Below are positions 39,559 through 64,000 of a stretch of DNA of 64,000 nucleotides, one piece after another (within the stretch, counting starts at the first letter, position 1; each line of letters opens with the position of its first letter). This stretch comes from Macrostomum lignano (taxonomy: Eukaryota): positions 37,451-101,450 of the forward strand of contig NIVC01003368.1 in NCBI GenBank assembly GCA_002269645.1. The letters are read 5' to 3'. The translations under genes and the position numbers were made by a program. Below the pieces are notes generated by a model. It saw only the letters and a program-made list of their open reading frames with translations. It ran no database searches and was not told where the DNA came from.

Positions 39559-39589
<31 letters not shown>

Positions 39590-39688
39590 ACTGCCCGTCT
39601 GTCTGTCTGTCTGTCTGTCTGTCTGACTGCCCGTCTGACTGCCCGTCTGACTGCCCGTCTGTCTGTCTGTCTGTCTGTCTAACTGCCC

Positions 39689-39728
<40 letters not shown>

Positions 39729-39779
39729 GGATGTCTGTTGTCTGTCTGTCTGTCTGTCAGTCTGTCTGTCTGACTGCCC

Positions 39780-39811
<32 letters not shown>

Positions 39812-39926
39812 GACTGCCCGTCTGACTGCCCGTCTGTCTGTCTGTCTGTCTGACTGCCCGTCTAACTGCCCGTCTGTCTGTCTGTCTGTCTGTCTGTCTA
39901 ACTGCCCGTCTATCTGTCTGACTGCC

Positions 39927-39971
<45 letters not shown>

Positions 39972-40482
39972 GACTGCCCGTCCCATCTCTCTATCTGTCT
40001 ATCTATCTACCCACCCCGCAAACCAATGACAGATCTCGGGCGGTGCCAGGAACGACCGGGTGCAGTTCCAGCTGCTGGAATTCCCGGTCACCGGCGCCAG
40101 TCTGGCCTGCAATGTCCGCCTGATCGACAAGGCAGCCGACCAAGTCCCTGCCGTGGCTTCAAACTCGCAGCAGCCGCAGCAGCAGCCGCAGGCTTCGAAG
40201 CCGGCATCAAAGTCAAACTTGTCTGGATCTTCAGCCACTCAGCAGCAGCCGACCCAGCCGCTGCCGCCGCAGCCGCGGCCCGACAGACTTCGGCACCGAT
40301 TGAAAACTCTGGTGGACGCCCAGGACGGGCCTCGCCTTGTGCTGATCAGGCAGCCTGCCCGGCCAGACGGCACAAAAGGATTCGTCAACCGGCCCCGGCG
40401 GCAGACGCCCTCTGGACTTCAAACCGACTGCAGCGCCGGTGCCGCCCTGACTGTTGAAACTGCCGCTCTGACTGTCCAGTGA
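37204..40482 (+). CDS. CSDE1: Cold shock domain-containing protein E1 (UNR), 4 exons, ~614 aa
   Basis: Exons 37204-37656 (GRIDQLQGTFGFIK..LFFHF), 38096-38467 (GIVSSLKDNYGFIER..VHFHFS), 38653-39222, 40033-40482 (SUZ-C-like RLKTLVDAQDGPRLVLIRQPARPDGTKGF). All introns are phase 0 GT-AG; total 1845 nt. The exon 3 acceptor could alternatively be 38664. Confidence 0.88.
37733..38052. repeat. ~23-bp minisatellite (CCCCTAGATAAGAGTCACAGCCA)n in CSDE1 intron 1
   Basis: Visible tandem unit with length variants. Confidence 0.93.
38500..38642. repeat. 22-bp minisatellite (GAGAATCGCCCCTGATCACATT)n in CSDE1 intron 2
   Basis: ~6.5 near-perfect copies ending ~10 nt before the acceptor. Confidence 0.95.
39223..40005. 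repeat. Interrupted (TCTG)n microsatellite forming CSDE1 intron 3
   Basis: Begins at the donor GT itself (CAG|GTCTGT). Confidence 0.97.
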
Positions 40483-40560: not shown

Positions 40561-41152
40561 CAGTCACTCAGCAGCAGTGTGTGTGGTGTGTGGGGCTGCC
40601 TCTCCACTTCCCAGTCAGCAGCAGTGTGTGTGGTGTGTGGGGCTGCCTCTCCACTCCCCAGTCAGCAGCAGTGTGTGTGGTGTGTGGGGCTGCCTCTCCA
40701 CTCCCCAGTCAGCAGCAGTGTGTGTGGTGTGTGGGTCTGCCTCTCCACTCCCCAGTCAGCAGCAGTGTGTGTGGTGTGTGGGTCTGCCTCTCCACTCCCC
40801 AGTCAGCAGCAGTGTGTGTGGTGTGTGGGTCTGCCTCTCCACTCCACAGTCAGCAGCAGTGTGTGTGGTGTGTGGGGCTGCCTCTCCACTCCCCAGTCAG
40901 CAGCAGTGTGTGTGGTGTGTGGGGCTGCCTCTCCACTCCCCAGTCAGCAGCAGTGTGTGGTGTGTGGGGCTGCCTCTCCACTCCCCAGTCAGCAGCAGTG
41001 TGTGGTGTGTGGGGCTGCCTCTCCACTCCCCAGTCAGCAGCAGTGTGTGTGGTGTGTGGGGCTGCCTCTCCACTCCCCAGTCAGCAGCAGTGTGTGTGGT
41101 GTGTGGGGCTGCCTCTCCACTCCCCAGTCAGCAGCAGTGTGTGTGTGGTGTG
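40561..41152. repeat. 47-bp minisatellite 3' of the CSDE1 stop
   Basis: Unit CAGTCAGCAGCAGTGTGTGTGGTGTGTGGGGCTGCCTCTCCACTCCC, ~12 copies. Confidence 0.96.
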
Positions 41153-42279: not shown

Positions 42280-42680
42280 TATTCCCAAGACAGCAAGCAA
42301 CCCCCTCCAAAAGTGAACAATCGCAGATAGCAAGCATCCTCTAATGCTCATAGCAAGAATCACCACAGATAGCAAGCATCTGCAGATTAGCAAGCACCCC
42401 CCAGATATTATAGAAGCATCCACCCAGATAGCAAGCATCCTGCAGATAGCAAGAATCCCTAAATAGCAAGCATCCTGCAGATAGCAAGAATCCCTAAATA
42501 GCAAGCATCCTGCAGATAGCAAGAATCCCTAAATAGCAAGCATCCTGCAGATAGCAAGAATCCCTGAATAGCAAGCATCCCTGGATAGAAAGAATCCCAT
42601 GCATGTAGCCAGTACCCCCTCTCCCAAATAGCAAGTATCCCCCCTCGAGAGCAAGCATCCACGAGACAGCAAGTAGCTAG
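42280..42680. repeat. Degenerate ~18-bp tandem repeat (AGATAGCAAGCATCCTGC-type)
   Basis: Recurrent ATAGCAAG(C/A)ATCC core. Confidence 0.8.
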
Positions 42681-42759
42681 TGCAAATGTTACTTCCGCTA
42701 ATGCAATAATCGCTTTCTCAGGTTGTGCAACAATCCACGTCTCAGCGAGCGCAATAATC

Positions 42760-45178
42760 TCTTTTTTAGACAGCGCAGTAATCAGCTTCTCAGCTAGTGC
42801 AATAATGCTTGGTTTATTAATAGCAATAATCCTTGATTAATCAAGTGCAATAATCCTTGGTTTATCAAGTGCAATAATCCTTGGTTTATCAAGTGCAGTA
42901 ATCTTTGGCTTATAAAGTGCAATAATCCTTGGTTTATCAAGTGCAATAATCCTTTGTTTATCAAGTGCAATAATCCTTGGTTTATCAAGTGCAATAATCC
43001 TTGGTTTATTAAGTGCAATAATCCTTGGTTTATTAAGTGCAATAATCCTTGGTTTATCTAGCGCAGTAATCCTTGGCTTATCAGGTGCAATAATCCTTGG
43101 TTTATCAAGTGCAATATTTGTTTATCAAGTGCAATAATCCTTGGTTTATCAAGTGAAATAATCCTTGGTTTATCAAGTGCAATAATCCTTGGCTTATCAA
43201 CTGCAATAATCCTTGGTTTATCAAGCGCAGTAATCTTTGGCCTATCAAGTGCAATAATCCTTGGTTTATCAAGTGCAGTAATCCTTGGCCTATCAAGTGC
43301 AATAATCCTTGGTTTATCAAGTGCAATAATCCTTGGTTTATCAAGTGTAATAATCCTTGGTTTATCAAGTGCAATAATCCTTGGCTTATCAACTGCAATA
43401 ATCCTTGGTTTATCAAGTGCAATAATCCTTGGTTTATCAAGCGCAGTAATCCTTGGCCTATCAAGTGCAATAATCCTTGGCTTATCAAGTGCAATAATCC
43501 TTGGTTTATCAAGTGCAATAATCCTTGGTTTATCAAGTGCAGTAATCCTTGGCCTATCAAGTGCAATAATCCTTGGTTTGCCAAGAGCAATAATCCTTAG
43601 TTTATCGAGTGCAGTAATCCTTAGTTTTCCAAGTGCAGTAATCCTTGGTTTATTAAGAGCAATAATCCTTGGCTTATCGAGTGCAGTAATCCTTGGTTTG
43701 CCAAGAGCAATAATCCTTGGTTTATCAAGTGCAATAATCCTTGGTTTATCAAGTGCAATAATCCTTGGTTTATCAAGTGCAATAATCCTTGGTTTATCAG
43801 ATGCAATAATCCTTGGCTTATCAACTGCAATAATCCTTGGTTTATCAAGTGCAATAATCCTTGGCTTATCAAGTGCAATAATCCTTGGTTTATCAAGTGC
43901 AATAATCCTTGGTTTATCAAGCGCAGTAATCTTTGGCCTATCAAGTGCAATAATCCTTTGTTTATCAAGTGCAATAATCCTTGGTTTATCAAGTGCAATA
44001 ATCTTTGGTTTATCAGATGCAATAATCCTTGGCTTATCAACTGCAATAATCATTGGTTTATCAAGTGCAATAATCCTTGGCTTATCAAGTGCAATAATCC
44101 TTGGTTTATCAAGTGCAATAATCCTTGGTTTATCAAGCGCAGTAATTTTTGGCCTATCAAGTGCAATAATCCTTGGTTTATCAAGTGCAGTAATCCTTGG
44201 CCTATCAAGTGCAATAATCCTTGGTTTATCAAGTGCAATAGTCTTTGGTTTATCGAGTGCAGTAATCCTTAGTTTTCCAAGTGCAGTAATCCTTGGTTTA
44301 TTAAGAGCAATAATCCTTGGTTTATCGAGTGGAGTAGTCCTTGGTTTATTAATATCAATAATCCTTGAATAATCCAGTGCATTAATCCTTGGCTTATCAA
44401 GTGCAACATTCTTTACTATCAAGTGCAATAATCCATGGCTTATCAAGTGCAATAATCCTTGGCTTATCAAGTGCAATAATCCTTGGTTTATCAAGTGCAA
44501 TAATCCTTTGTTTATCAAGTGCAATAATCCTTTGTTTATCAAGTGCAATAATCCTTTGTTTATCAAGTGCAATAATCCTTGGTTTATCAAGCGCAGTAAT
44601 CCTTGGCTTATCAAGTGCAATAATCCTTGGTTTATCAAGTGCAATAATCCTTGGTTTATCAAGCGCAGTAATCTTTGGCCTATCAAGTGCAATAATCCTT
44701 GGTTTATCAAGTGCTGTAATCCTTGGCCTATCAAGTGCAATATTCCTTGGTTTATCAAGTGCAATAGTCCTTGGTTTATCGAGTGCAGTAATCCTTGGTT
44801 TTCCAAGTGCAATAATCCTTGGCTTCTTGAGTGCAGTAATCCTTGGTTTGCCAAGAGCAATAGTCCTTGGTTTATCGAGTGCAGTAATCCTTGGTTTTCC
44901 AAGTGCAATAATCCTTGGTTTATTAATAGCAATAATCCTTGGCTTCTTGAGTGCAGTAATCCTTGGTTTGCCAAGAGCAATAGTCCTTGGTTTATCGAGT
45001 GCAGTAATCCTTGGTTTTCCAAGTGCAATAATCCTTGGCTTCCTGAGTGCAGTAATCCTTGGTTTGCCAAGAGCAATAGTCCTTGGTTTATCGAGTGCAG
45101 TAATCCTTGGTTTTCCAAGTGCAGTAATCCTTGGTTTATTAATAGCAATAATCCTTGGCTTATCGAGTGCAGTAATCT
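42760..45178. repeat. 2.4-kb 24-bp satellite (AGTGCAATAATCCTTGGTTTATCA)n, ~100 copies with higher-order blocks
   Basis: Visible unit; explains the 696-aa LHLINQGL/ALDKPRII ORF and overlapping ORFs. Confidence 0.98.
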
Positions 45179-45250
45179 AAGTGTTTTTATTTAGTCCTTT
45201 AATAAAACCTTTTAATAAAAAATTTTACACTACTACTTTTAAACTACTTA

Positions 45251-45305
45251 GATTCGAACCTAGGTCGCTGCATTAGCAGTCTGGTCTGTTCAGCTCTAGG
45301 CTAGC
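45251..45305 (-). mobile_element. tRNA-like SINE head fragment
   Basis: rc AGCTAGCCTAGAGCTG..GACCTAGGTTCGAATC: degenerate A-box and canonical B-box; no full cloverleaf. Confidence 0.5.
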
Positions 45306-45484
45306 TCTCATCGAAGTTATCAGTGATGTTGTACCACTTATATAATTCAACACTCACACCAAGTCAGGTAGAGTAAAAAGTCACACGAAGCAGTTATGAC
45401 ATAATCAATTTCTTAGGCAAGTCAGTACCAGTGTCTATGAAAGTTTACAATATGGTTACGTAATATAAATTCAGTACTGCGCTA

Positions 45485-45870
45485 TGCTTTCACACTCAAA
45501 GCTGTGACGCAATTCAATTGAGTGTCAAATTCAGCCAGTACACAGACGATAAATAAAGTGTATTGTGATGCAATCTATTTCAGAATCAGAATTCAACCAG
45601 TCAGTTTTTCTGCTAGCATTCTTACGATGCATTTCAAGTCGAAAGAGCTGCTTGACCTTTGCAAAAAAGCATGTTTTTCGAATATTTAATCCCTTTAGCA
45701 TCAAGCAATTTCTTAGCCACGATGCATGTACTGTCACGGGAAAATTTCTGATCGAACAGTGCAAGTTCGAAGAAAATCGGTTGAGCCGTTTTTGCTAAAA
45801 TCGATCACACACACACACATACACACACACACATACCGACAGACCATTTTTAGTATATTGGAAGAAGAAT
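45485..45870 (+). mobile_element. DINE-1/Helentron-like non-autonomous element
   Basis: ..CAAGTTCGAAGAAAATCGGTTGAGCCGTTTTT..(CA)n..ACAGACCATTTTTAGTATAT; a second copy fragment lies at 5870-6045 (-). Boundaries are approximate. Confidence 0.6.
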
Positions 45871-47267
45871 ACAGAAGACTTCTAAAGTTGATAGGTGAGG
45901 CCATAGACAGCACGCGAACATCTGAACTGAGAGAAAAACAAGCTTGAAGTCTGACAATGTAGAGATGACGCACTGCTTTCGAGTGCAGCAACGACCTAGG
46001 TGCGGAGTGAGCGGAGTACCGTTTTGCGTTCGGCAATGCCCCATTGCGTTGCCACACGCATTTATGGTAAAAACAAAATCAAAATCGTTTGACAATGCAA
46101 CAAGTCTGAGATGTGTTAACTCAAATTAACAGACTTTTTTCTACCCCAAATGCATTGATTTTGAAAGCAGCGCCAAAAATTCCGTTCGTGTCCCTAAACT
46201 ACTGCTACTACTACTACTACTTACTACTACTTCTACTAAACTTTGAATTTGCTAGCAACGAGTAGTCGGCTTATGAACCTAAGAATAAGGAGTGATACAT
46301 ATTAGGTCTATGTAATCTGTGGTCTCAGTTGAGTTTTTTTTGGTCAAAAAGTTCCGTGCTGTCTATGGCCCAACCTGTCTTGGTTTGAAATCTAATCTCT
46401 TAGATTGTCTGTTTTCTAACTTGGTATATCAAAAGCAATGCCTAATTAGTTTAACGTATTTTTACTTAATTCTTCAATGGTTTAGCTTCATTATTTGTCT
46501 ATGGCCAAAGTGTCAACTTGATGGCGTCCCGGGGCACACATTTGGCATTTTGAACATAGACGAAAACGAAAACTGCGTGCGTTAAAAAAATTAAAAGACT
46601 TTATTAACCCTGTAATTCAGTTACTAATTTGTTTAAAATGATCAATTATTATTAGTGTTCTATAACTACGTTATGTACTTTCGTTGGATAACAATTGTTT
46701 ATTCCAGGTTATTCAGTGTAAAATATTCATTTTTAACATGTCCTTGCTTTACATTGTTTGCTAATACAATTCTGTAACTTATTATTTTAGTACGGTACTG
46801 CAGGCTCATAAAAATGGTTCATTTAAATTTTATGATCATTATAATAAATCATATTGGTTTGCTGCGTAATCCAATTAATTTTGATTAGCCGCCCCATTGT
46901 GTCACATATATTTGCAATGGACATCTACATGCCTGTGCCTCAGTTTCACTTGCTAAAACAGTTGCTGCCTGTTAACTTGAAAAAATCGATATTGTGTAAA
47001 AGTGATTCATTTGGTTTATGTATGTTTCTGTCAAAATCAATTTAAAATTTAAAAAATTGGGCAACGTAACCATTTTTGTCGCACTACTCACTGCAAACTA
47101 CTAAAACTACTGCTGTCTTTCGACTAATAAAAAATTAAATTGACCAGCAGAATTTACTCACTTGTGGGCCGGCATTAACATATTTTAACTTCATTCTGAC
47201 TGTCAATCTTTATTATTCATACCTGTTGCGGGTTTTATTTTAGTTTATCTAAAAAAGTATAACCCCG

Positions 47268-47725
47268 GCAGTAGTTACCTACCCTCAGGCACTTCAGTTA
47301 GCAGCAGTTTCCCTACCCTCAGGCACTTCAGTTAGCAGCAGTTACCTACCCTCAGGCACTTCAGTTAGCAGCAGTTACCTACCCTCAGGCACTTCAGTTA
47401 GCAGCAGTTACCTACCCTCAGGCACTTCAGTTAGCAGCAGTTACCTACCCTCAGGCACTTCAGTTAGCGGCAGTTTCCCTACCCTCAGGCACTTCAGTTA
47501 GCGGCAGTTTCCCTACCCTCAGGCACTTCAGTTAGCAGCAGTTTACCTACCCTCAGGCACTTCAGTTAGGAGCAGTTACCCTACCCTCAGGCACTTCAGT
47601 TAGGAGCAGTTACCCTACCCTCAGGCACTTCAGTTAGCAGCAGTTACCTGCCCCCAGGCACTTCAGTTAGCAGCAGTTACCTGCCCCCAGGCACTTCAGT
47701 TAGCAGCAGTTACCTGCCCCCAGGC
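47268..47725. repeat. 33/34-bp minisatellite (TTACCTACCCTCAGGCACTTCAGTTAGCAGCAG)n upstream of the CCDC86 exon
   Basis: ~13-14 copies ending ~35 nt before the acceptor at 47759. Confidence 0.95.
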
Positions 47726-47759
47726 CCTTCAACCAGCACTGACATCTTGCGCATTGCAG

Positions 47760-48116
47760 TCGTCAGTTCAGCCAGCAGACGTCAGCGAGGAGGCGGCACC
47801 GTTGCGAGGCCGGCCGAAGTCCGGCAAAGTGTGGAAATCCGTTCGCACTGAACGCTCCTCCTCGGCCAGATGCGACAAAGTGTTTCACACCAGCTGGTCA
47901 AAGAAGATGCAGTTGAAGCTGTCCCAGCAGGCAGCCAAAGCGATGGAGGCTGAGCTGCGAGCCAAGCGCAAAGAGGAGGCTGACGAACGGCGATCGCGCT
48001 TAGCTGCCAAGCGCAAACGACGCGAAGAGAATGTTCGAAAAGCCGAGGTCACTTGCACTATTAAAAATCCGGCCAAGATTCGCAAGACTAGGAAGCGCTT
48101 GCTGAGAAAGGTGTGA
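47760..48116 (+). CDS. CCDC86: Coiled-coil domain-containing protein 86 (Cgr1 family), terminal exon
   Basis: [45 protein letters not shown] matches the Cgr1/CCDC86 motifs. There is no upstream in-frame ATG, so it likely begins at the acceptor TTGCAG|47760; the first exon was not located. Confidence 0.85.
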
Positions 48117-48139
48117 GATTGGCTTGGCTGACTTTGTTG

Positions 48140-48490
48140 TACAGACAGTGACAGACAGACAGAGACAGACAGACAATGACAGACAGACAATGACAGACAG
48201 ACAATGATAGACAGACAAAATGACAGACAGTCAATGACAGACAGACAAAATGACAGACAGACAATGACAGACAGACAAAATGACAGACAGACAATGACAG
48301 ACAGACAAAATGACAGACAGACAATGACAGACAGACAAAATGACAGACAGACAATGATAGACAGACAAAATGACAGACAGACAATGACAGACAGACAAAA
48401 TGACAGACAGACAGAGACAGACAGACAATGACAGACAGACAAAATGACAGACAGACAAAATGACAGACAGACAAAGACAGACAGACAATA
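48140..48490. repeat. (GACA)n-based compound repeat (GACAGACAGACAAAAT) 3' of CCDC86
   Basis: Direct reading. Confidence 0.95.
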
Positions 48491-48806
48491 AGAGGCAGAT
48501 ATGCGGTGTCAGACAGGTTAGTGGCAGACAAGTTTAAAAAGGATGCCGACTGAAATCTGGCATTTGCGCATTATTAGCCTCTGCCTTAGCATTGGCGTTA
48601 CTGGCGTCAAATAAATTGAGTCAGCTAAGCTATGATTCGCTTTAAAGCGCTTATGAGTTGGTAATTGGTCTCGCAGTATGAGCTAATGTTATTAAAAACT
48701 TTAGAAACTTTTTTGTATTAAATTTTTTTTATTTAGTAGATTCATATATATCCTTTGAAGTAAGTCTTAATAATGGCTGCAGCACAATAATAAGCGATAT
48801 ATACTA

Positions 48807-50477
48807 CTATTTTGATTCGTCGTTCCGTTTGTCGCCGCCATTTGGTTTCCATTTTTGCCGGCAGGTCACGTGACCTCCTACTACTCGAAGCCCGACTTCG
48901 GGATCTTGTCGACCTGCTAGTCGTTGATCTTCCAGTCCAGTGACTAAGCGGACTTCCTCGCCGTCCGCGCAGCGTTGCTGCTGTTGTCCTTGGCAGTGAA
49001 GTTGCAGGTATCGTTCGAATTTCTGCTCCACAGATAGGCCAGAATGGAACAAATCTCTGGACATCAGATCTGTCCTGGGTGGCAGCGTTTCGTTTAGTTC
49101 GTCTCGCTCTTTCTGCTTCTGGAAGATGCGCTCCCGTCTGATGCGGCATTGCCGCTGTTGCTGCTGCTGTTTTTGCTCGAGCTCGTGACGGGACCGAGCG
49201 CAAGCCAGGTAGCGGATGTGGCGCCGCTGCTCAGAGAGCGTCGGCTTAGATGACGTCGAATGTTTTGGCGAATGCTTCTCCTGGCTTTGCTGTTGAGTTT
49301 TTTCACGCGAGCGCCTTCTGTTGCCTAGGACTCGAACCTGAATGCCAAAAGAGGAACAAATAGCGAAAATTATTTTTAGGCAGAATGTCAATCAAGTGCA
49401 AATTACTCCTGTGAGTTGTGGCAGCTGGGGGAGGGCACACTGCCGACTAGCTCTCAGTAAACCGTGGTCAGGCTTTCCTGCGAAAGGTCATGGACCTTCC
49501 ACGATGATACCCTGCATCGTATGCAGCCGAATTACTTTTTTGAGGCTCCAGAACGGAAATTGGCTTGACTGACTTCAATTAACCTTGTCGTTTTGATTTG
49601 CAGCGGGCCCAGAGGCCCCAGACAGGCCCCTCTGTCTACTTTACTAAATAACCCCGGACCATTCTTCTCTTGCCAAAATGGTCGATTCAAGATTCAAGTC
49701 TGATTTTTCATTCTGTATCTTGGTAAAGAAATCTTTATCCATTCCAGTTTAAAGATACAATATACTCGTAAATTCATCAAACTGGTTCTTTAGAATTTTT
49801 TATCAGTGTCCTCTGTCAAAGCAATGACGGTAACCTTCAACATCCTTCGATGTCACTAATGTTGGCTTGACTTAAAATCGTACATGTTCCCATTCGTGTC
49901 CTACATAATTTATTATTTACCTATTTACACGTGCATTTCATTGTACTATTGTGACAAGAGCTCGAGGTTTTTTTCAACTTCTCATTTTAACAAGCAATTC
50001 TTAATTTCTGAGCTCTTTAGTGCTGTTATAGAGACGGGTTGGAGGATTTCTAGGCTCCGGATCACGTGATTAATGTGACCAGTTAACAGATATATGTGAT
50101 TAAAATGTGTAAATTAGATGTCTAAGCAAGGTAATATTGAGCAGAGCGCATTGCTAGTACAGAATTATTGTTAAAACTTAAATCCCCGTAAATTCATATA
50201 CATTTTTGTGGCTGAAATGTAAATGTGGGCAAACTTCGGCGAGCAACTTCCGTACTACCGCAGCAGCATAGCATGGTTATTGGTTGCTCACCTGACTCCT
50301 CCAGCTGCCTTTGCCACCAATTAGTAGCACAGTCTCCTGCTGCTCCTGCGGCTGACTCTCCTCCAACGACGAGCTGATTCTTTGAGAAGTGGCGCCCGGC
50401 CCATCCGCATTGCCATCCCGTATTGGCAGCTGGTATTGCTCGGGCATTGAGTGCGTTTTAGTGGCTGTGTTCGCCAT
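48807..50477 (-). CDS. Two-exon uncharacterised Q/R/S-rich protein, ~238 aa
   Basis: ATG at 50477 (agaATGg). Exon 50477-50292 ends CAG|GTGAGC; acceptor ATTCAG|49337; a phase-0 join gives a continuous ORF to the stop at 48807. Both exons are GC-richer than their flanks. No family recognised. Confidence 0.55.
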
Positions 50478-52714
50478 TCTCAAGGCGAATTGATGATGAA
50501 CTGATCCGTTCTCGTACACTTACACCCTGCTCAGCAAGTTTGAGTTTCTTACCAGTGCAAGCAACATTAGTGTAGTGCGGCTTTTATACACGTTTTCTGT
50601 CTGTTCGATTGAAAAAAAGCTATATACCGCCGCCATCTCTCGCATCATCTTGCATCGCAGCTTCTTTGCCAACTTTAATGGCGCTCCCGTGATGCATTAC
50701 TAACTGCACTTTATAGTCCGCGACACGCCTCATGGTTACATTCCCAGCCTCTTGAATGGCTGGGCTCTTAATCCCATTCCACTTTCTCTTTGTGCTACTC
50801 TTTTTATGTTCCCCCTTTTTCTCGCCATTTTTTACTTATGAATTTCTTTATGGCCTGGAGGTTTTTTTGCGAAGAGACAGGAAGTCATCCATTCCGTATT
50901 CCAGAAGCGCCCTCTACTCTTCTTTCTCATTTTTCTATACTATTTGTAACCAATTATATATAATCCCATGCTGGTTTTACTTCTGGTACGGTTAATCACG
51001 TCTGAAGAATTAGTTAGAATTTTGTAAAGTGTCTTTTAAAAAGTCATTTAGTTTTCTACTGAGGTTCCGACTGAAGACGCACCTACGCACAAGGTACCAT
51101 TCTTAGACAACTGATAACAAATTATTTTAACAGATCCAAACCGAATTTGCGAATTTGCGTTTTGTTCAGCTCTGAATAGGGTTTTACCATAGACCAAATC
51201 GATTGAAAAAAATCAGAGATAAAGACAACTTAAATGCATGGAATGTTGAAGAATTGTACAAGCGCTATCCATATGGTAAATCCTGCAGTAATTCTTTGAA
51301 AAGTGGACGTCTGTCTATTGGAAGAAGCTGAGCTGCAAAACCGATCATTTGTTTCATTGTTATTAGAGCAAAGCATAGTATCGCTTTTGGCGTTCTAAAA
51401 GAGATTGTGGCCAAGCAAAACTAGATAGACTCCATATCCTCTTCATACTAGCTCGGTTTCAGCACGAGCGATGTTAAAAAACATGGCATTAAGTACGCCC
51501 GTATAATCCATAGACTAAAAATGAAGAATAAAAGAGACACGCAGCCTGTCGGTACGAGACTAAATGGAAAGTAACCGATTTTTTTTCGAAATCTCTAATA
51601 ATTAAAGCATTAGCTATAGAATGAATGATCCGTTATTCTTTGCGTCGATCAGGATTTGACGGTCTTCTGTTGGAATCGGTGGAGCCATAATAGTTGTACA
51701 GTTTAAAGTTGAGGTGCAGCAGGTTGAAACAGAGAAATTTGTAAAACTAGCTGAGGGATCGTTCTCGTATTGATAAGGCACTGCGTCTCATTTAGATTCT
51801 CCATTTAAAGTCTATGGCTTTTCGGGGCATAGTCTATGGCATATAAGTAGTCTAATTGGATGTTGTCATACACTTTGGAATCTTTGTAAAATGACACCCT
51901 GAAGAGAACAAAAAAGTTAACGGCGAATAGGATTGATATCCCAGGGACTTCTGCGATATAAGTATACCATAGCTCGCACATCAGGGACGATGAGCCAGTA
52001 AGTGCCATAGAAAAAATGCGAGCGACAGGCCTGCGATAGGTGAGCAGAAGTCCCTGATAGGCACGACTTAAAATTCTTTTTTAAGTTCTAGTTTTACCGA
52101 AATAATGCTTCATACTTCATGTTAATTAAAAATTACGTGAAAAAAAACCAGAAACTTTTTGCATGCCATAACTAAAGGCTAAAAATAGAATCTGCAGCTT
52201 GATAAAGTCTGAATATAAATATTTATATTTCTCAAGGATTATAATAAAATCTGATTTCTTTATAAACACACAGGGATAGAAGCAATAGACATAAAGAATA
52301 TAGAGGCTTAACTTAAAAGAATATAAGTAATCATTGCAGAGCTCAGAAAATAAGTTTCTCAGAAAAAATAGGCTTTTTATGAAAACTCAAAACTTTTAAT
52401 TGAATTAATAAAACTTATGCAACCTTTTATAAATAGTTTCTCTCTTTCAGTATTTCGATATAGCAAGTAAGACTATTTTTAATTACGTAGAATTAGAGTC
52501 GCTGAGGCAGTCCGATAGAAATCTATACCTAAGTACTTAAAAGTAGCCGGAAAAGGCACAGTTTAAACATAAAAATAAGAAAAAATAATATATATATTTG
52601 TGTCTTAAAAAGTTTTTCTCCAAAAGAAAAATTTCGTCCCTTTCTTATCAGCTCTGTGTTTTCCAACGTTTCTCTTCAGCAGCCTAGCTTATTCCATTAA
52701 TCTGCATTGATATG

Positions 52715-55700
52715 TCAGTCTCCATTGTACACGATTTTCTCTTGATTGGCTTTGATTGCTTTAGCCTGCTGCTCTTCTAGTCGAATTCCGGCCGTGCAGA
52801 TGTAGAGTTCCAGCTCGTCCAGCTTCCCGTCCAGCACCATCAGATGCTGCTGTCCATCTGAGGTTTCTGCAGAGTTGGTTTATAATTTAGATGTAATTTA
52901 GATGTCTCACTTAAAATTGATAACAATATAGTTGAGATGGTCGAATGATCAAACCAATCCGGGAACTGCTGTCTGCCAGGTTCTGGCTTGCGTTCTGGGC
53001 GTATTTTGTGAGCCTTTAGGAAATTCCTGAGTTAATTCCTAGCTTGATTATTTCAATTTTGTTGCCTTAGAACAGGGGTCAGCAAACTCAAGAGTCAAAT
53101 AGAGAGTCTAACGCATTACTGCGGCTCAGAGGAGGGGAGAGAAGAGGAGAGACTGGAGAGAAGGGGGAAGAGAGAGATCTGAGAAGTGACACAAACATTG
53201 AACGGGCCGGATTGACTGTAAAGTTTCAAAGGACCCGAAGACCGGATAGAGAGGCTTTGCTGACCCAAGCCTTGGAAGAAAACTGTACGACATCATTGAC
53301 AATCAGTATCCATATGAAATCTGTTAAGATAAATAATCCCTACAATTAAGATCCCGGATCATGTACATGTAGAGGTGTTCGTTGTCAATTTACCTTGCAT
53401 ATAGTTGAACCTGGTATCGATGTGATGCAGCTTATTGGCGGCCTCCTTGCAGCCAAACAGCGATCTTATACAGGAAACCGCATAGTCCACGATCTCATAT
53501 TCGTTAGAGACGTTGGCCCAGTCGGCTTTGACAGCCGAGAAGCTCTCCAGGATGATGGTGAGGAAGAAGTTAATGAGGATGAAAGAGACGAACAACATGT
53601 AGAAGAAGAAGAATATCATGCCGAGGTTTCCACCGCCAACGATGAAGGTTGTGAAGTCGAATTTGTCTGCAAAATATTGTGGCGCATAATAAAGATGCCG
53701 GAAAATATAGTGTACCTACTATACGCATATACATGTAGAGGCCAACTGTTCGCTACTATAATATATATTAAACAATATACACATGCACATCTAGCATTTT
53801 TGTAGTGAATCTCCCATATGTGTCCTTCCACTGGTGCACATTGGCAGGAATGCTAATTCGAAGAGCCCCTGTCTCTCGGTGGGCGCCCTTCTTTTTTGGG
53901 CGCCCCTATCACTTGGTTAGCACCTCTTTCTCTCGGTGGGCGCCCCTTTCTCTTTGTGGGCACCCATGTCTCTTAGTAGGTGTCTCTGTCTCTCGGTGGG
54001 CGCCCCTGTCTCTTGTTGGGCGCCTCTGTCTTTTTGGGGCAACCGCTAACTCTTGGTAGGCACCCCTGTCTCTCGGTGGGCGCCCCTTCTCTTTGTGGGC
54101 ACCCATGTCTCTTGGTAGGTGTCCCTGTCTCTTAATGGGCAATAAATTCCATCAAAATGCAATCTCTCGATACAATAAAATTCGTACTGGTGGTAAATAT
54201 GCTTATAGTGCTTCTCTGTTTTCGCAATATGTTTGGCCTCGGTCAGTAAACACTAGACACTGATATATATATAAGAAATACCTATCATCCCTGACAATTC
54301 TTTTACTTAGATCTTAGGTTCCATTTAGGAGCTAGGAGCATTTCAATCAGTCCCGTGACGCATAAAACCTCATGTTTTTTATCGGTTGCCAATGCCCTAT
54401 ATGCGAGCTAGTTAAATCTCGTATTCTCGAACACATTTTCGGATTCGTCCTTTATAGTTCTTCCTTGATTTTCCTGCTGGGAGCATGCATGCCTTAAACG
54501 CATACCTGTTTGATATAAACAAGTTATAAAGCACCAACTCACTCAGAGTCATAACGCCCAACGTCTCCACAGTGGCAATCGGAGTCTTGAAGCTTTCCAC
54601 ATTGCAGAAGAACATTAAGTAACCCATCTGCACAAATGCAAAAAACATGATGCCAAACACGACGCCAAAGTGCAGCAGAGGCTTCACCGCCTTCTGCAGC
54701 ACGCAGCCCAGCATGCGCATCTTTCGGTTGAACGTTAACAAGCGGAGGAATCTAATCGTGAAGATGAACACGATCAGGCCCATGAACAGCTGGTTCATCT
54801 GGAAATCAGTTGAAAAAAAGACAAGGAAAGTAGCTTCAGTTTCATTTCTATTGCTGTGCTGTGATAGCGTCTCCAATGAAATTTGCTATCAAACGAAAGA
54901 TCACACTCACCTGCTGCCAAAGTATCAGCCACTGAAAGTTGACAAACTTATTCGGATACGTTCTGAGCAGGTACGAGACAGCCTTCTGGGCGACAATTCT
55001 CGTGGCAAACAGGCCGATTTCGGCGCAGCAGACAAGAAGCAAAACAAAATCCATGACGTTGAATGCGTCCTGTAAGTTTTTGTTGAAATAGAATTACAGA
55101 AACGCATGCAGAGGCGCTGAACATATACTGTAGGGAAGCAGAATGTTCTTACCTGAAAGTAGCTGCACTTTTTCTTATGCAACGCTCGGATTTCTTTCAC
55201 CAAGAAAACAACAATGAAGATTAGCGAGACAATGTCCAAGGCGAGGTACAGCATCCCGTTGGCGCCGACGTATCGATCCATTCGCAGCGTGAAAATCATC
55301 GGGTCGGGCAAGAATGAGCCACCGTTGTGGAACTCTAGCAGCAGCTCGCAGAATGTGAACAGATTGGTGTTTGGATTGTACAGAAGCATCTCAACGAATA
55401 CGCCCCTCGTGTAAACGTCTAGCCAACCTTCTTTGGCCAGTTTCGTTACTTTTGACCGAGCTTCGTAACGATTGCGGCCTAGCGAGGCTACATAGCCGCC
55501 GCCTGAGTAAGTTGCGATGGTGCCGCCAACCGGTGTGCCGTACATCTCCATAGCGTCGGTGTAGGTCCACTCGGGTTGGACTGGCGCTGGAATAGTACAG
55601 CTTGTATTCAGGTTTTTTTCGCTAAAAAACTACACCCAGTAGCATGTTAAAGTTTCCAACTCAAAATCAGTGGTTTACGCTCGTACTTTTCTCGGAGCTC

Positions 55701-58700
55701 AGCAGCCCAAGTGATGCGATTCACGCCACGCCCGCAGTTCTTGTCTCAACTGTGGGTAATCTACTTAGCAAACCTCTATTGCTCACGCTAGTGCGGAGAG
55801 AGTGGAGAGTTATGGCTAGAGCTGCATTGAAGCTGCCACTCTCAGTTGTCAGGCCTTATGAACTGGGTTCATAGAAACTTAACCATGTTGCTGAATGTAA
55901 CACTGTCACGGACTCGACTACAGCAACCTTCCGATTCTGATTGTTGTCGGTAACCTTTAGATTTACATGAAAGCTTCACCTGAACTGGCTCTATCTTTCG
56001 TCCAGACATTCACTTTAGAATCCATAATACTCTGAGAAGGTTTGGTATGTCTACTGTAAAAGTGTTGCGATTGAATGTGGAGAGAACTTTTGGGGCTACA
56101 TTGAGCTGGCTTTAATGATGTATCTACGATCTTTAAAACAGAATTATCATTATTGGCACAATAAAAATACCAATCTTCCTTAGGGTTAATGACCTATAAA
56201 ACTAATCACTGACAAACTACAGACAGTTGTCATTTGGCAAACTTACTGGTTGAATTTGCCAGCAGCCAGCCAGGTGCAAAGGACCTCTCATCGTCGCTCC
56301 ACATGCTGTACTCAGGGCGGCACTCGCTAATAATGTTGGCAAAGTACGAAGAAATTTTGCAGCTGTCAACAGCCTTCTTGATTCGCAGCTGTCTGAGTTG
56401 CGCCATCCGAACCAGCATGAGGTTCGGATCCGAGGTCCAGTTCAAGCCAATTTGATTGCAGAATTCCCCATTGTAGCAGGCAATCGGATAGGCAGTTGGG
56501 ATCACAGTGTTGTTTAGGTAGTCCCACAATGAGTCACGACGTATAGCTGAAGACATCGTTTTGGCCTGATGCGTCTCATTTTGAACGTAGATACCCTTGG
56601 TCAGCATGTTTTTCACATAATTGTTCTGCAGATACGATCGGTAATCCTGACTAGTGTAGGCAGCCATCATGAGTACTACGAGAAACAGAATGTAGAAAAC
56701 GATGTCCTTCAAGATGTCGTTCATGTTGTTCTCACGGATTCTGGATGGTGATGTTAAAATAGACTGTAGTAGAAACTGTACATTAGTTCAAAAATATTTG
56801 TGCAAACTTAAAAAGTTACAACGGTGAAATGGTGATAGAATTTCCTTACCGCTGCTCCCGCAACTCCCTCAGCACGTGCTCATCAGGCGGCGGAGGCGCC
56901 CGCTTCGACTTCAGGAACATCTCCCTCTTGCTGGGGTCGGTCAGGTCCTTGATGCTCAGCCGCTCGTGCACTGGCGGGAGGCCCGCAGCGACCATCTCCT
57001 TCGTCACCTCGTCCTCGTCCTCGTCGATCTTCTTCACCAGCAGAGCGTAGGCGGCGGCATCACCACGATCTTCACCGGCTGAATCAGCACGATCGACTGC
57101 AGCAAAGTGACAAGCATCGAGGCGAGCCACTCGGACGTCTTGGCCTCGCCGAGAACTCCGCCGAACTCCACCATCAGATAGGTGCACGCGGCCACGCTGA
57201 GAAACGACAGGATGTAGCCGATGATGTAGGACCACCAAGGCAGAGGCCACACGCGGCGCACGGCTGGGCGGATTCGAGCCAGGACTTTTGACTTGAGCGA
57301 CTTTCCGGCGGCTTCTTCGGTGGCGACAGACGGTTCGCCAATGGCATACTTTTCACCATCCCCAGCGCCGCTCTCTTCGTCAGGTGTGACCGGCCCGCGT
57401 GGCTTCACCTTTGAGGCCTTCTTCGGCTTGTTGCGTCTGTTTTTGAACAGCACAACAATGAGCACGTTAATCGGCAGGATGATCAGCGAGGACACAGTTG
57501 CCAGGTAGATGCTGTGAGCAGTGAGCTTTATCGGGCCGAACTCGATGAGTTGCGGACTCTCGACATGTTTTGACTGTCCGTAGAACATAAGGTTGACCAT
57601 CATGGTGCTCATGACCAACACCAAGCAGGCTGTGGCTCGCTGGACTCTCGTGAACTTGCTCCTGGGAGACCTGGTCACCACCGAGAGCCACAGGTGGCCG
57701 TCGTTGAGGTTCTTCTGCGCCTTGCTCCAGAAGACGACTTCAACTTCCTGACCTCCTCCATTCCGGACACGGGCAAAATCCTGTCCACCTGAAATTGGCA
57801 CACTGATGTTGCGTCTCTGCTCCAGTGCAATGTCTACTCAATAAAATGCTTAGCTTACCATTCCGTCATCCTCGTCAAATGCGAACCAACGATTGCAGAT
57901 AAAGAAGTACTTGTCTCCTGTCTGCAAATCTTCAACCAGCAATCGATTGAAGTACCACTTGGGATCTGAGCCGGCGTTGTCGTGCCAAATCCTGGCATGG
58001 GTGAGACGGCCGAGGTAGCTCGGAGTCGTCATGAAGAACGAGTCTACGCAGCCAGTTTGCAGAACGGGTCTCTTAGGATCAAGGACCGGCCGAGCCTCAC
58101 TCTCCGAGTCCTCGCCGATCAAAGAGAATGACACCTGGGCGGTCGTGCCGCGTGTCGTCTGGCGCCCGTCCAGAAAGTCAACTCATACCTGAGAATTTTA
58201 AACAATTATTGAATGTTTTAAAATTGCATAAGGTTTTGATAACTTCAAGCTTTCATAAGATCAGTCGGAGAGTCAAGCCTGTCCGTAAAGAAGAAGATAA
58301 TAATTACTTACCTGAATTCGTCTGCCGGATGATTGTCTGGCAACGGCGTGACGCCAACCTTCTTCATGTCGTCCTTGTCTTTTCTGCGAACCCAAACAAC
58401 AATGATTAGGTAGAAACAGACCAGTGCCAGGACCACGCTCAGTGCGATCGGGTTGCTGTCCAGCTTCAGCCAGCCCGAGTCGGAAGGATTAAACGCCAAC
58501 GGTGGCACGTAGAATGAAGACATAAACGAAGTCATGTGGCTGCTGAAGCATTGCGTTTCAGTTGGCGTACTGCACTGACCGACCTGAAAAAACATTTTCA
58601 ACACGTATTTATAATTTGAGGGGTTATTGAAGAACTAAACAAAGTTTATTCTGAAACGTTTTCATACATGAACGCCTATATTGCTAAACTGAGAAGAATT

Positions 58701-61700
58701 CGTGTCAAAATAATAACAGCCAGCCGTAAACGCTGTGCTCTTGAAGTCATGCTTAGGTACTGATACTCTGGTATCTTGGAATTTTCGCTGTTGCCACTGC
58801 TGCTGTCACCATCTATAGTTTTCACGGATGGCTTTCCGTCAACGTCCAGTTTAATTGCTCGAATGCCGAAGTGGACGGTTTTTTCGACCTCGCGGCTGTA
58901 ATTATAGTAAATAATATTCGCTTTGTATTGAAGTTATAATTATTAAAAGACATATAAGCATAAAAACACGTACGTATTGAGATCGTCCACTGAAAGGTAG
59001 CAAGTCCACAAGTCAGGCTGATATGAATTCGACTTCTCGCAATTGTCTGTTGAATCCAAGTCGCTGTTTGGACTGCACCAAGTCGAGTTGCACATACAAT
59101 TGGTCAGCTTATAGTCCGGTCCAGCTGGTACTGACGTCCCATTATAGTCAGTCAAGGGAGCAGAACCAACCCAATGTGCTGTTCCTACAGTTGCACGGCT
59201 CCTGTCTAAACTCGGAGCCCGAACTCGAGTCGGAGGCGTTAGAAGGTGCACTACACATAGTCGTTGCTGGCAGCGGCAGCTGGCACAGCCGGTCATAGGA
59301 GCTATCAGTAGGTGGCTCTCCCGCTTTAAAGTACACTAGGAAGCCGTAGTTCAATAGGTTCGTGGCCGTAGTTTCGTTGCGAGCGGTGGCGTCGGTCGAG
59401 TTCAGATATTGCTCAACTTTCACGAACAAGGCATTGCTGGTCTCCACTAGTACTTTCTGAGTTTGCAGAGTGACAGACTTGTCTGCTGTCTGTCCGTAAG
59501 TGCTGGGAAGTGTCTCATTGTCCGCCATTATGTTAGTGAGCCGCATTTCAATCCAAGAAGATGAACCGAGATCACTGATGTCATATTCCCCATTTGTAGA
59601 GGAGGACATGGTAATGGAGTAAGTGCTCGAGCTCATGTTTCCACCGCCTTTGGCCGATGCGAACAAGTTTGACTTGCTTTTGATGACCTGGAGATTTAAA
59701 AAGGCCTCGTGCAGTAGATGCCATGCTAAAATTACTTAAAGTAAGAAACGAAAGAGTCTTACTTTCGTCAGCGCTGACTGGGAGGGAACCGTTGTGTTAG
59801 GATTTCTCGGATCCGGTTCCACTAAGAGGCTGCTTCCGTAGCTATCTTTGAAATCGCCGAGCTTGAAGTTGTCACATCCTGTTGAACCGCTGGCCTTGAG
59901 TTTTGCTGGAAGTTTAAAAAAGTAATAACTATGGTCTGTGTAATAGTTAAAAAGAATTTAAGCATTAAAAGTAAACAATGAATAGTTTTTAGCGTACCAT
60001 TATTCAGTTTGCTTGGCTGCCGTTTCACGACCACAATGCTGATGTTGGGAGTTGAAATATGCGTCTCCCGTTCATCCGTGACCATTTTGTTAGCCAAAGA
60101 ATCGGCAGCGGTATGTAATTGCCTAGCTGCTTGTTTCCAAGTTTTAGTTTGTTTGACGACTTGTCTTGGTTTCCTGCTCCGTTTTGCTCTGCGTTGTTAA
60201 GTGACGAGGTAATACTTTCGGAGGATGCAACTAGCCGATTCACGCTAGCGAGAACTTCGTGGTATGACACGCCGCGCTGCTGCGAGATTTCAAGCAGATT
60301 TTTTGCCATATTTTTAGCCGTTTCAGCAACTACGTCAAGTGAATCCTCGTCAAGTTCGCCCTCAGTAATTGTGCTGAGCATTTTCGACTGGAATTCGAGG
60401 TCTCTCAGTCGATTGTCTGTCGTGGTGTTGCTATCAGAGGCGTTAACGCACTTTGATATCAGATTAACAACTTTGCGCTTGAATAGAATCATCTCTTGAA
60501 CCTGAGCAGGTGTATCCACTGTTACAGTGCTAAGGGAGTTAATGGCTGGGAACGCAGCCTTTCCCATTTCACGAGAGTTTCCTCCGTAAGCGGAGCCTTC
60601 AATTCTGTTGTAGATGTTTCCATTGCTGAGCTCGTCAATGCTCATTTGTCGCTCCTTGACTCGCAGCAAGGTGGAGATATTATAGAAAGATGAAGCCATC
60701 GCTGCGTCGAACACCTCAATGCAGATAGTAATCATGTAGTCACGCTTCTGAGCGCCGCTAGGTAGCATTGTAGCCTGGCTTAGTTTGCATTCATTGGCAC
60801 CTGACAAGATAGCGGTATTCAGTAAATAAGATGACGTATTGAGCTATTTACTAATAGCGAAAATGCACTGCTCACCTATTTCAATCGGAATGCAGTCATC
60901 CGGTCCGCTTGGGTTCTCCAGCTGGCTGTAACCAATGTTGTACTTTAGTGAGCCGTCGCTATCCGTGGCACCGTCGCACGTGAGCTGAAATCTCGTATTC
61001 AAAGCTTCGCCAACGGTAGGAAAGGCTCGAACAGAGAGCAAGCTTACGTCTGGAGCAGTGTTGATCATCAAGTACAGCAGTTTGAAGCCATAGTTAGTTG
61101 GCGATCCATCGCGGTAGGACTTCACCCTGAGTATGTAGATGCCGTTCGATGCGCGCGGCAGACAGCCGACTCCATCGATGGCAAGTCCCGGAGAGGAAAT
61201 TCCTAAAATATCAGAATATTTGTTTTAATCTGAGTAAACTATTTTAAGCTTTTTAAAGAAACTTTTCAACTTCTGTGGCAAACTTTACCTGTACTTGCAC
61301 AGTTTTGGCCATCTAAAATAAAATATAGAAAGCATATATTAATTTTTGTGCTCTTCCACGAAAATGCAATTGATTGATAGATAGCTATTTGATAAGTACT
61401 TTTATTATCCAATACAATAAAAGATGATTACCAATGATGCTCCAGTCCGGACCCATTTCATCCATGTCCAGCTGGGCCAGCACTGAACTCTGCGACAGAT
61501 CGTACGGACAAGATGTAACTGGATTTTTTAAATTAGAAATCTGCCAGCGATAATGAAATCTCACGCCCGGAATGTAATTGTCAATCGATGTTTGGAATTT
61601 TATCGGAATGTTTGGGTTGATGTTGATGGCTTCATCTTCGCAGGCTCTTCCGTTTATCTTCGGGTTCTTAATGACGCTCCTGTGGCAATTGCTGATGCAT

Positions 61701-64000
61701 CTAAAATTACAAAGGCACACCGGAGGATCAGACAATGTCATTGTTAATTAAGTAATACAAAAAGCAAGCTTACATGTCAGTTATAATTGGTGGCATTCCA
61801 AGAGTAAATGTAGCGACTACATGTGTGATCTGTGGTTCCAACAATGGATCGTTTTTATCCCGCACGACAACATAAATTCTGTGGCTTTGCTTCTCAAATG
61901 TTGTCAGAGTGTTCAAAATGAGACTGGAATCAGATCTTTTACCAGACATATAGTACAAGTAACGGTATACTTTTTTGTTTATGGCGTCATCTTTCCATTT
62001 TTTGAAACTCGGAATGTCATAAACATAATCCATTTTTCCTGCTCCACCCGAATAGTTCCAATCACCTTTAATTATGCGAGAAAGATGATGTCTAGTCTTC
62101 AGAGGATCCAATGAGAAACACGTTAGGTTATGTACCACGTCACCATTCATGTTTGTCTTGTTGCAGACATTCTTCGGCTGGTTTGCAAAACTGTACGAGG
62201 CGTCGGGACCGAAGATGAGTTCTCCCTCGCACTCGCGGTTGCAGTAGTATTCAAAGTCCCAGTCACTGAACTCTCCAGCCAAGGCGAACTTGTTCGGATT
62301 GACGCTGCAGCTCGCGTCGAACTCCACCTCGAAGCCGAACTTGCTCTGCGCAGGGCTGCTCAGCTTGTACCACCTCGAGAGCTCTTGGTCATACACTCTG
62401 TAGTTGAGACATGGTCGCAGAGGCGCTTTGTAGATGTACACATCAATTGAGTCGGTTGTGTTCAGGGCGGGCTCTTCGACCATCGTGGCCTGTACAGTGA
62501 TCCTGTACACTGTATCGATGTTCAATGCATAAGGAAACACAGTGAAAGTCTTGAGTTGGTTGTTCGATCCTTGGTACATCACTCCAGATATCATCGTATC
62601 GTCCAGAGAAACATAGTTTACGTGACTTGGGTAGTTCTGATGGAACTGCTTCAGCTGTGGTACGAAGTCCTGCCATGAATTGGTGCCGTTATTGTATCTC
62701 TCGATTTTCCACTTCACTTCGACACTGTTATTGTAGCAGTTAACACTGAGGTAGGGGTTAAAGACGAGCAGTTGTTCTCTTGAAAACCGCGGATCCGGCA
62801 TCGAGTACGAAAGATTGAGCTTCGGCTTTGAGCACGGCCCTTCGAAACTACCATGTAGAAGGAGGTCTCCTGCATGGAGTACTTGTTGTAGCCTTGCAAG
62901 CGAACAACCTTTTGGTCAAAATACGTAAAGTTCTTGATGAAAAGAACAACTGTAGACACAGGAGGACTCGCCAGCGACTCTTGGTAGAGCCTGTTGTACT
63001 CTTGCGAAAGTTGATTGTCCCAGTACATGCTGCCATATAGAGAGCTCACTGGAGACAGAGTTTGGCATGCGGTGGCACTGCCAAACATGTGAGCGCTCTG
63101 ATTGGCTACAACTTTGTCACCAAAGGCGCTAAAGTCCACAACAAAGCAAGCTTCTGCAGGAAGTGTTCCCAGATCGATGAAACTTCGTATGGCTGCATCA
63201 TCGATGCTGTGATTTCTGCTCCAATCTCGAGCTTATCCACTGGTCTGTAGACACTGATGTTTACTGAGGCGAAAGCAGTGCTGTACGCATGGGAAACATT
63301 GACTTTGATGATATAGCTTCCTTCTTTTGCATACTGATGGCTGACTGAGTTAGTGCTGGATTCAGTACTGATTCCGTCACCGAAGTCCCAGGAATACTTT
63401 AAACCTGGACCGCTACCGAACTGCATTGTTGCAGTGAAGGTCACAGGCCTGTTTCTCGGAAAATACCGTTGCGAAACCCACGCGGACATTCTGGGATCGG
63501 CAGCAACATCGGGGTGAGGCACAGCGGCCACTTTAGGTCCCACAATCAATGCAAAAATGGAGATGTTGTGTGTGATTTCCTGGAGTCCGATGGGTTTAGC
63601 GACTCTGACGGTGGCAGTAAAGTCTCCCGTCCAGCTGTATGTCTGAGGTGGAAACAGGTAACAGAAGATCAGACTGGGTTCGATGCTTGAGCAGGCAGTG
63701 TTTTGAGCTGATGTTCCCGTATTGCAAGTTGTTAGTCTAGTGGGTCCAGTCACACCGCTCGAATCGCCCTTGTCGATGGTCACATCACCCAGTACAGATT
63801 CGGCTGTGATGTGTAGTTTGTGCTAGCACACAGAATGAAGTTCGGATCCGTGATATTTGATGATCTCATGTCGATGAGTCCAAGTTTTAGAGCCGAGATC
63901 GCAAATCCGAACGGTACCAACAAAATTTCGACCGTTGTTCCTTCAAGTGTGATAGTCTCCGAGCTCACTTTTGTTGGTTACTCGGCGGTGACAGTGAAGT
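52715..64000 (-). CDS. Polycystin-1-like / REJ-family protein (PKD repeats, REJ, GAIN/GPS, TM1, PLAT, polycystin channel, C-terminal coil); 5' end outside the window; frameshifted as assembled
   Basis: Exons (minus): >64000-61774, 61700-61432, 61312-61289, 61202-60876, 60800-59998, 59905-59763, 59687-58974, 58895-58668, 58583-58312, 58188-57859, 57788-56850, 56740-56247, 55621-55153, 55069-54911, 54798-54543, 53666-53394, 52866-52715. Motifs: YSWDFGDG (PKD), GCYYFD..CFSSHMTSF (GPS), TG..GTTAQV..WHDNAGSDPKWYFNR..FICNRWF (PLAT), HLWLSV..FTRVQR, TYSGGGY, YTRGVFVE (channel). At least 10 frameshifts (see findings). Confidence 0.9.
53073..53269. mobile_element. Charlie/hAT-like MITE in the last polycystin intron
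   Basis: CAGGGGTCAGCAAACT...TTTGCTGACCC; TSD CCTTAGAA / CCTTGGAA (7/8); same family as 20195-20343. Confidence 0.85.
53865..54140. repeat. ~20-bp degenerate minisatellite related to 14690-15060
   Basis: GGGCGCCCCTGTCTCT(C/T)GGT units. Confidence 0.8.

Follow-up and report, generated by a model that had tools for sequence, protein, structure and literature searches.

Watson and Warr, writing in Nature Biotechnology in 2019, reportedly described artificial frameshifts and false pseudogenes caused by residual insertions and deletions (indels) in long-read assemblies. Consensus indels from PacBio reads have been found to yield both, and in one benchmark a single run of Pilon left most of the indels in place (PMC10359078). 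The collapse of near-identical alleles also gives apparent frameshifts, as in the re-assembly of Trypanosoma brucei Lister 427 (PMC8445201). Here we describe the final 64 kb of contig NIVC01003368.1 (101,450 bp) of the Macrostomum lignano assembly Mlig_3_7, a stretch of 64,000 nucleotides (nt) that we refer to as the window and whose base 64000 is the end of the contig. A large polycystin-1/REJ-like gene (PKD1L2/PKDREJ-type) on the minus strand of the window (52715..64000) is interrupted by a series of frame breaks, which very probably are bases dropped from the long-read consensus and left uncorrected in a redundant contig tail of low quality. The locus was found free of lesions elsewhere: as an intact product on contig NIVC01004015.1 (hereafter L004), as intact sequence at both sites that could be compared by DNA on contig NIVC01003334.1 (hereafter L003), and in near-identical UniProt models. 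The lesions themselves were dominated by indels, ran in one direction and were accompanied by few substitutions, and they followed the position on the contig in coding and non-coding DNA alike. Moreover, the other contig ends of the overlap had private errors of the same kind.

As in the PacBio and Oxford Nanopore Technologies artefacts of the ILRA benchmark (PMC10359078), single-base indels break the open reading frames (ORFs) of a conserved gene, one direction prevails, one Pilon pass was incomplete, and the gene appears pseudogene-like or split to predictors. The window differs in that its errors are massed in a redundant contig tail and are not assembly-wide, in that half of the resolved sites lie outside homopolymers of at least 3 bases, and in that a clean duplicate exists on another contig. 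Mlig_3_7 was built with Canu 1.4 from PacBio continuous long reads, and the polishing described for it was by Pilon only, using Illumina reads (Bowtie2) and RNA-seq (STAR), with a Quiver or Arrow step unmentioned. Its authors reported that duplicated non-repetitive blocks of ≥95% identity add up to 180 Mb, and that the sequenced DV1 line carries extra large (duplicated) chromosomes. In a passage of a further source, M. lignano is termed a hidden tetraploid (PMC5704211).

Minus-strand three-frame views of the window showed the receptor gene switching frame within exons. To these exons we mapped, via exact k-mer diagonals, three near-identical M. lignano proteins: P0010 (A0A1I8G9Y8), P0129 (A0A1I8FY15, 1,997 amino acids (aa)) and P0279 (A0A1I8G5L0, 2,201 aa), of which the latter two had been retrieved by an exhaustive representative search and cluster look-up. 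Nine frame breaks inside exons were confirmed, and the window was short of bases at every one. The three proteins read through eight of the nine sites, with the protein running on residue by residue over the breaks and the flanking blocks either overlapping by 1-2 nt or sitting 2 nt apart. A first-pass annotation, made from the letters of the window, had counted at least ten frameshifts, nine of them -1 and one +1; its tenth site needed no repair, and its +1 site proved to be a loss like the others.

The break nearest the contig end shifts the reading from frame 2 to frame 1, one base short, within a 40-nt interval that is open in both frames (63783-63822). It had been annotated as TGGG for TGGGG at ~63789; the frame change is there, but the exact base is not fixed within the interval. 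Because two paralogs, P0130 (35% identity) and P0133 (25%), were ungapped across 63789, this break lies within continuous coding sequence. At 63178-63182 the window has GTTTC for the intact GTTTTC (-1; P0279, MMQPYEVFIDLGTLPAE); the intact form gives EVFIDLG, exactly as had been proposed for 63181 (GTTT to GTTTT). The next break, at 62836-62841, is a -1 in which AAGGGCCG is short of one G or C (P0279, FYMVVSKGPCSKPKLNL); the filled protein, SKGPCSKP, agreed with the KGPCSKP annotated at ~62839. Further 3', ATACC stands for the intact ATAACC (-1) at 60110-60114 (60112), where the intact models read KLKLGNKQLGNYITAADSL (P0010, P0129 and P0279, GNYITAADSLANKMV). Here the first-pass annotation was right that a break exists, but had placed it 31 nt upstream as a lengthened A run (TAAAA to TAAAAA, ~60143).

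The site that had been read as one surplus base, or as a 4-bp TGAC duplication, at ~59156 is a loss of two: at 59156-59159 the window has TCCC(TTG) for TCCCCC(TTG) (intact models, GWFCSPLTDYNG). Filling it converts TCCCTTG to TCCCCCTTG and gives the protein WFCSPLTDYNG, in keeping with protein blocks that overlap by 2 bases. Just upstream of the GPS motif, ATGAC replaces ATGGAC (-1) at 58746-58750 (58748; intact models, EYQYLSMDFKSTAFTAGCYYFD), a break that had been recognized but set at ~58756. Within the PLAT domain, GCGGC replaces GCGGGC (-1) at 58147-58151 (58149), where the models and the paralogs both have YELTFWTGARRHAGTTA; the filled protein, ARRHAGTTA, bears out the repair (GCGG to GCGGG, HAGTTA) suggested for ~58148. 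The last two breaks were each confirmed by an extra base in the DNA of both L004 and L003. These are TTGAA for TTCGAA (-1) at 57742-57743, giving RKFEVVFWSK, as expected from the VVFWSK annotated at ~57743, and GATGCC for GATCGCC (-1) at 57059-57060 (KIVVIAAAYALL), giving VVIAAAYA. At the latter the annotated break (~57058) was correct, but its repair, ATG to ATGG with MAAAY, was not.

The supposed A7-to-A8 repair at ~55615 was unnecessary. The A7 run (55619-55613, minus strand) was the same in all three contigs, and both it and the acceptor AG that had been assigned (55623-55622) are intronic (55587..55623). The acceptor in use is the AG at 55588-55587, 35 nt downstream, with the exon starting at 55586, where P0129 and P0279 read LLANSTTPVQPEW. 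With the nine sites filled, the coding sequence in the window comes to 2,684 codons with a single internal stop, the in-frame TAA at 63978-63980 (minus strand) that the first-pass annotation had also singled out. This codon is 21-23 nt from the contig end, P0133 was ungapped across it, and it may be a substitution error or the product of paired indels. The true run length was at least 3 bases at four of the eight resolved sites (4, 3-4, 5 and 3) and 1-2 bases at the other four, so the description of the losses as mostly in homopolymers holds only loosely. A CpG-linked deletion pattern, suggested by 57059 and 57743, was considered and dropped as the other sites do not fit it.

The same DNA was found on other contigs. 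Bases 5-15709 of L004 matched window 42399-58120 with an identity of 99.77%; the alignment contained 10 mismatches and opened 23 gaps. Judged from this alignment, which was seen over 42399-58120 and which we infer to continue to 64000, the final ~21.6 kb of NIVC01003368.1 (window 42399..64000) is the first ~21.6 kb of L004 assembled a second time. The end of L003 aligned to window 47368-58105 at 98.99%, making it a third copy of part of the region. Beside Cgr1/CCDC86, L004 is annotated with an intact 3,494-aa product with PKD, REJ, PLAT, Polycystin_dom, Ion_trans and PKD_channel domains. The L004 exon that spans 57059 and 57742 is one unbroken frame, the same as that of P0129, and L003 was intact at both sites. 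Given these contig copies and the three near-identical UniProt models, the preference of the first-pass annotation for unpolished long-read error was well founded, but not its concern that the errors would hide a functional receptor from annotation.

The lesions followed the contig and not the gene. Between window 53356 and 57742, five of the six indels relative to L004 were bases absent from the window (53356, 54083, 56845, 57059 and 57742), and L003 sided with L004 at all five. Three of these DNA-confirmed absences (53356, 54083 and 56845) are non-coding, and the remaining two are the claimed frameshifts at 57059 and 57742. No base was absent from the window relative to L004 over 42399-53355, and none of the window's absent bases is farther than 10.6 kb from the contig end. 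The errors are thus not confined to the receptor gene, as had been thought, but extend over the last ~10.6 kb, with introns and adjacent non-coding DNA included, and they are local because this stretch is a redundant contig tail overlapping L004. L004 showed a comparable pattern at its own start, where in the first ~1 kb all 11 of 11 indels were bases that L004 itself lacks. In the L004 comparison as a whole, all indels but one were bases absent from one contig or the other. Each of the three contigs had private indels, several near its own end, at positions where the other contigs agree.

An exception to the near-end pattern was a group of six bases absent from L004 at window 51055-51906 (L004 8648-9492), ~9 kb from the L004 start. 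Five of these six coincided exactly with a substitution in L003 relative to the window, which suggests that a consensus drawn from mixed reads drops a base at positions of single-nucleotide polymorphisms (SNPs). In this respect the region resembles the T. brucei Lister 427 case (PMC8445201), with which it shares the presence of several near-identical copies. It differs from that case in that, at the bases absent from the window, the other two contigs agree with one another; for the window's own losses, a shortage of reads at the contig end is a likelier cause than an effect of SNP sites.

The coding sequence showed the same excess of indels. Over 2,186 residues aligned between the window and P0279, there were eight indel events (9 bases, all absent from the window) and four to five amino-acid changes, and in the ~1,500 residues 3' of 60228 there were six of the indels and no amino-acid change. 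In the 15.7-kb DNA overlap with L004, indels outnumbered substitutions by 23 to 10. In real divergence, substitutions are several-fold commoner than indels. Since the window shows the reverse, these indels are not ordinary mutations.

The 57-64 kb part of the window had 1.47 frame breaks for every kb of coding sequence, whereas ~7.6 kb of coding sequence used as a control had none (Poisson P ~1.4e-5). The controls support the earlier statement that the neighbouring genes are intact. TAF13 (34886-35332; single exon, 134 aa) and CSDE1 (614 aa) are intact in the public annotation, the ASC/ENaC profile continues over four exon ORFs (profile coordinates 1-177, 175-281, 296-439 and 439-455), and the TLC/TRAM and RING profiles were unbroken over neighbouring exons. 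This contrast in break rate divides the contig tail from the contig interior, and not one gene from its neighbours.

Based on these observations, we propose the following origin for the tail. Several near-identical copies of the region would be present in M. lignano DV1, with long minisatellites nearby, and the assembler would have broken its graph there, leaving overhanging tails that were built on a single corrected PacBio read or a few of them. A likely reason for the assembly break is a tandem array of 24-bp period and 99.5 copies (42796..45177; 2.4 kb), which begins ~400 bp inside the start of L004. A Canu consensus without polishing would drop bases and these losses would be kept in the tail, where a single Pilon pass may have left them unmended, as the short reads would find a better match in the cleaner duplicate.

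Several points weigh against residual consensus error. The tail is not simply the same molecule as L004, given the 10 substitutions and the four to five residue differences from the UniProt models. As at least partly another allele or copy, it could in principle bear real lesions. For the break at 63789 and the TAA at 63980 all the comparators were paralogs, none of them near-identical, and the sites from 58149 to 63181 rest on protein models, as the L004 DNA comparison ends at window 58120. An independent assembly, ML2, is presumed to be the source of the UniProt models. Finally, the read coverage of the tail and the reason for the failure of Pilon there are deduced.

The first of these points bears on a rival reading, in which the tail comes from a true allele or duplicate that became a pseudogene very recently, for instance on the extra large chromosome of DV1, where redundancy relaxes selection, and in which the deletions are true. 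The duplicated chromosomes of DV1, its 180 Mb of near-identical blocks and the hidden tetraploidy described in part of the literature (PMC5704211) would supply such a copy. The substitutions also point to a distinct haplotype or copy contributing to the tail, as do the residue differences: eight of the ten window-L004 substitutions are transitions, and nine of the ten cluster at 53527-55149, where L003 sides with L004. This cluster (eight transitions among its nine substitutions; one synonymous in an exon and the rest intronic) is followed by 3 kb with none, and looks like a haplotype or copy switch within the contig tail. We nevertheless consider recent pseudogenisation, which the first-pass annotation had offered as an alternative, very improbable. 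A ratio of 23 indels to 10 substitutions in the 15.7-kb overlap is remote from that of biological divergence, and so are the eight indels against four to five residue changes over 6.6 kb of coding DNA, with six against none in its 3' ~4.5 kb. Every event is a deletion, their density is equal in non-coding DNA, they set in ~10.6 kb from the contig end, and the other two contigs each carry comparable indels of their own, several of them close to the respective contig end. The mixture expected of a decaying gene, with substitutions beside indels, nonsense codons and relaxed residues, was not what we found: there was no nonsense substitution besides the TAA 21 nt from the contig end, and in a pairwise alignment with P0130 the window matched the paralog at two of the differing residues and was conservative at one, whereas the UniProt allele matched it at none. 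Because its residues at the differing sites are the paralog-like ones, the window allele is not the odd one. A related proposal, that the tail is a faithful extra copy or allele in DV1 that lost constraint and has been decaying almost purely by small deletions while the others stayed intact, we regard as very improbable.

Losses in one direction only and a reading frame that is otherwise clean would also be expected if the genome truly lacked the bases and transcriptional slippage, base-insertion editing or programmed ribosomal frameshifting corrected the product, but these are the only features in favour of such recoding. Genomic copies containing the bases exist on L004 and L003 and are implied by the read-through gene models, and similar drops occur in introns and intergenic DNA, so recoding is unnecessary. 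In addition, no slippery motif or long homopolymer is common to the nine sites (whose contexts include ATACC, ATGAC, TTGAA and GATGCC), one of the events is a -2, and the genome does not uniformly lack the bases. We therefore consider this mechanism, which the first-pass annotation had listed as its least likely option, extremely unlikely. Overlooked very short introns or alternative splice sites are a different matter at the tenth claimed site, 55615, where the acceptor at 55588/55587 joins the frames without repair. At the other nine sites there is no room for an intron, with near-identical proteins continuous at eight and the paralogs ungapped at 63789; as an account of the breaks in general we judge this very unlikely, and we accepted it for 55615 and rejected it for the nine.

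The locus holds no new biology: the breaks are present in the assembled sequence but are a textbook long-read artefact in a somewhat instructive setting. Where the ends of Mlig_3_7 contigs overlap other contigs, roughly 1 base per kb can be missing (roughly 1% over the initial kilobase of L004), and genes there resemble fresh pseudogenes. Counts of pseudogenes, gene losses and recoding candidates in drafts made with Canu plus Pilon should first be checked for proximity to a contig end and for a duplicate contig. Users of M. lignano data should take the 3,494-aa model of NIVC01004015.1, and not the window locus, as the functional copy of the PKD1L2/REJ-like receptor.

The receptor gene has 17 exons in the window, its 5' side being truncated by the contig end. 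Exon ends were located by motif, and P0279 and P0129 were mapped onto the window. On the minus strand the exons are 64000-61774, 61700-61432, 61312-61289 (24 nt) and 61202-60876 (exons 1-4); 60800-59998, 59905-59763, 59687-58974 and 58895-58668 (5-8); 58583-58312, 58188-57859, 57788-56850 and 56740-56247 (9-12); and 55586-55153, 55069-54911, 54798-54543, 53666-53394 and 52866-52715 (13-17), with the stop codon TGA at 52717-52715. The 16 splice junctions of these exons all follow the GT-AG rule. The exon number and canonical splice sites given in the first-pass annotation were correct, as was the presence of the gene at 55610-63985, but it extends further 3' to the stop at 52717-52715.

The domains predicted from its sequence mark the gene as an unexceptional polycystin-1/REJ family member. 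Pfam searches of the window's own exon translations identified PKD, PLAT, Polycystin_dom and PKD_channel, with an extracellular PKD repeat in exon 1 (PF00801, 7.8e-19). In P0279, REJ (PF02010, 1.6e-16) and a post-GPS PLAT domain (PF01477, 1.3e-18) were matched, as was the C-terminal channel region (Polycystin_dom, 2.1e-33; PKD_channel, 1.1e-26), which the window exons match too. A GPS-like motif, CFSSHMTSF, is visible by eye in the gene, and the Pfam GPS profile (PF01825) gave no match on the M. lignano proteins scanned. The predicted order is that shared with PKD1L2, PKDREJ and sea-urchin REJ: a PKD repeat, REJ, the GPS-like motif (CFSSHM/TSF), a transmembrane segment, PLAT, a multi-transmembrane block, the polycystin domain and a PKD2-like channel region of six transmembrane segments. 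The best named matches were PKD1L2 and 'polycystin family receptor for egg jelly' of lophotrochozoans, at 31-36% identity, and no feature unusual for the family was found. A homology search with the repaired C-terminal half identified P0010 (99%), a paralog of 58% identity and PKD1L2/REJ-type proteins of other animals (about 30-36%). A word-index search with the repaired exon 1 gave bacterial PKD-repeat proteins only; as this search missed even the 99%-identical M. lignano models, absence from it is uninformative.

The third exon (61312-61289, minus strand) is an AG/GT-flanked micro-exon of 24 nt encoding DGQNCAST, which is kept in the paralog P0130 as DGVEYAST. All three UniProt models of the receptor gene omit it, and the public gene models probably miss it. 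These models also each omit different parts of conserved exons or mis-splice them (window 62117-61701 and 59762-59280; FEVLLQPRINGRA and TLKLLGCQADW), which hints that their source assembly has local errors of its own elsewhere. The receptor copy on L003 has a private extra T at 18956-18957 (equivalent to window 56708), ~2 kb from the L003 end, that breaks its frame, as well as a G-to-R change at 19557. Upstream of the neighbouring gene, the window has a lone A/T difference from L004 at 47758, 2 nt before the annotated start of Cgr1/CCDC86; a Cgr1/CCDC86 product is annotated on L004 and L003, and the look-up gave none for NIVC01003368.1.

Elsewhere, the TAF13 protein was located on two contigs of GCA_002269645.1, and BLAST with the locus so identified placed window 24931-45335 at NIVC01003368.1:62381-82785. 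Within the window, an ORF at 22951-23367 was considered as a mariner-like transposase and dropped, as it had no Pfam match. Bases 30001-32000 showed an extreme strand asymmetry (for the 2-kb bin, GC skew -0.65 and AT skew -0.45); each of the three plus-strand frames is open there for at least 500 codons, with a low-complexity translation rich in S, L and P, and Tandem Repeats Finder listed no repeat in this interval at a score of at least 600. Minisatellite arrays crowd the window, with periods of 4-47 bp and up to 99.5 copies. The long arrays are at 471-1331, 11761-12601, 15925-16611, 35360-36105, 39228-39976, 40568-41152, 42796-45177 and 47268-47731. The 21-bp unit of the array at 11761-12601 reappears at 15925-16611, flanking or within the ENaC-like gene, and the array at 39228-39976 is a (TGTC)n repeat that overlaps the span of the CSDE1 gene (about 37.2-40.5 kb).

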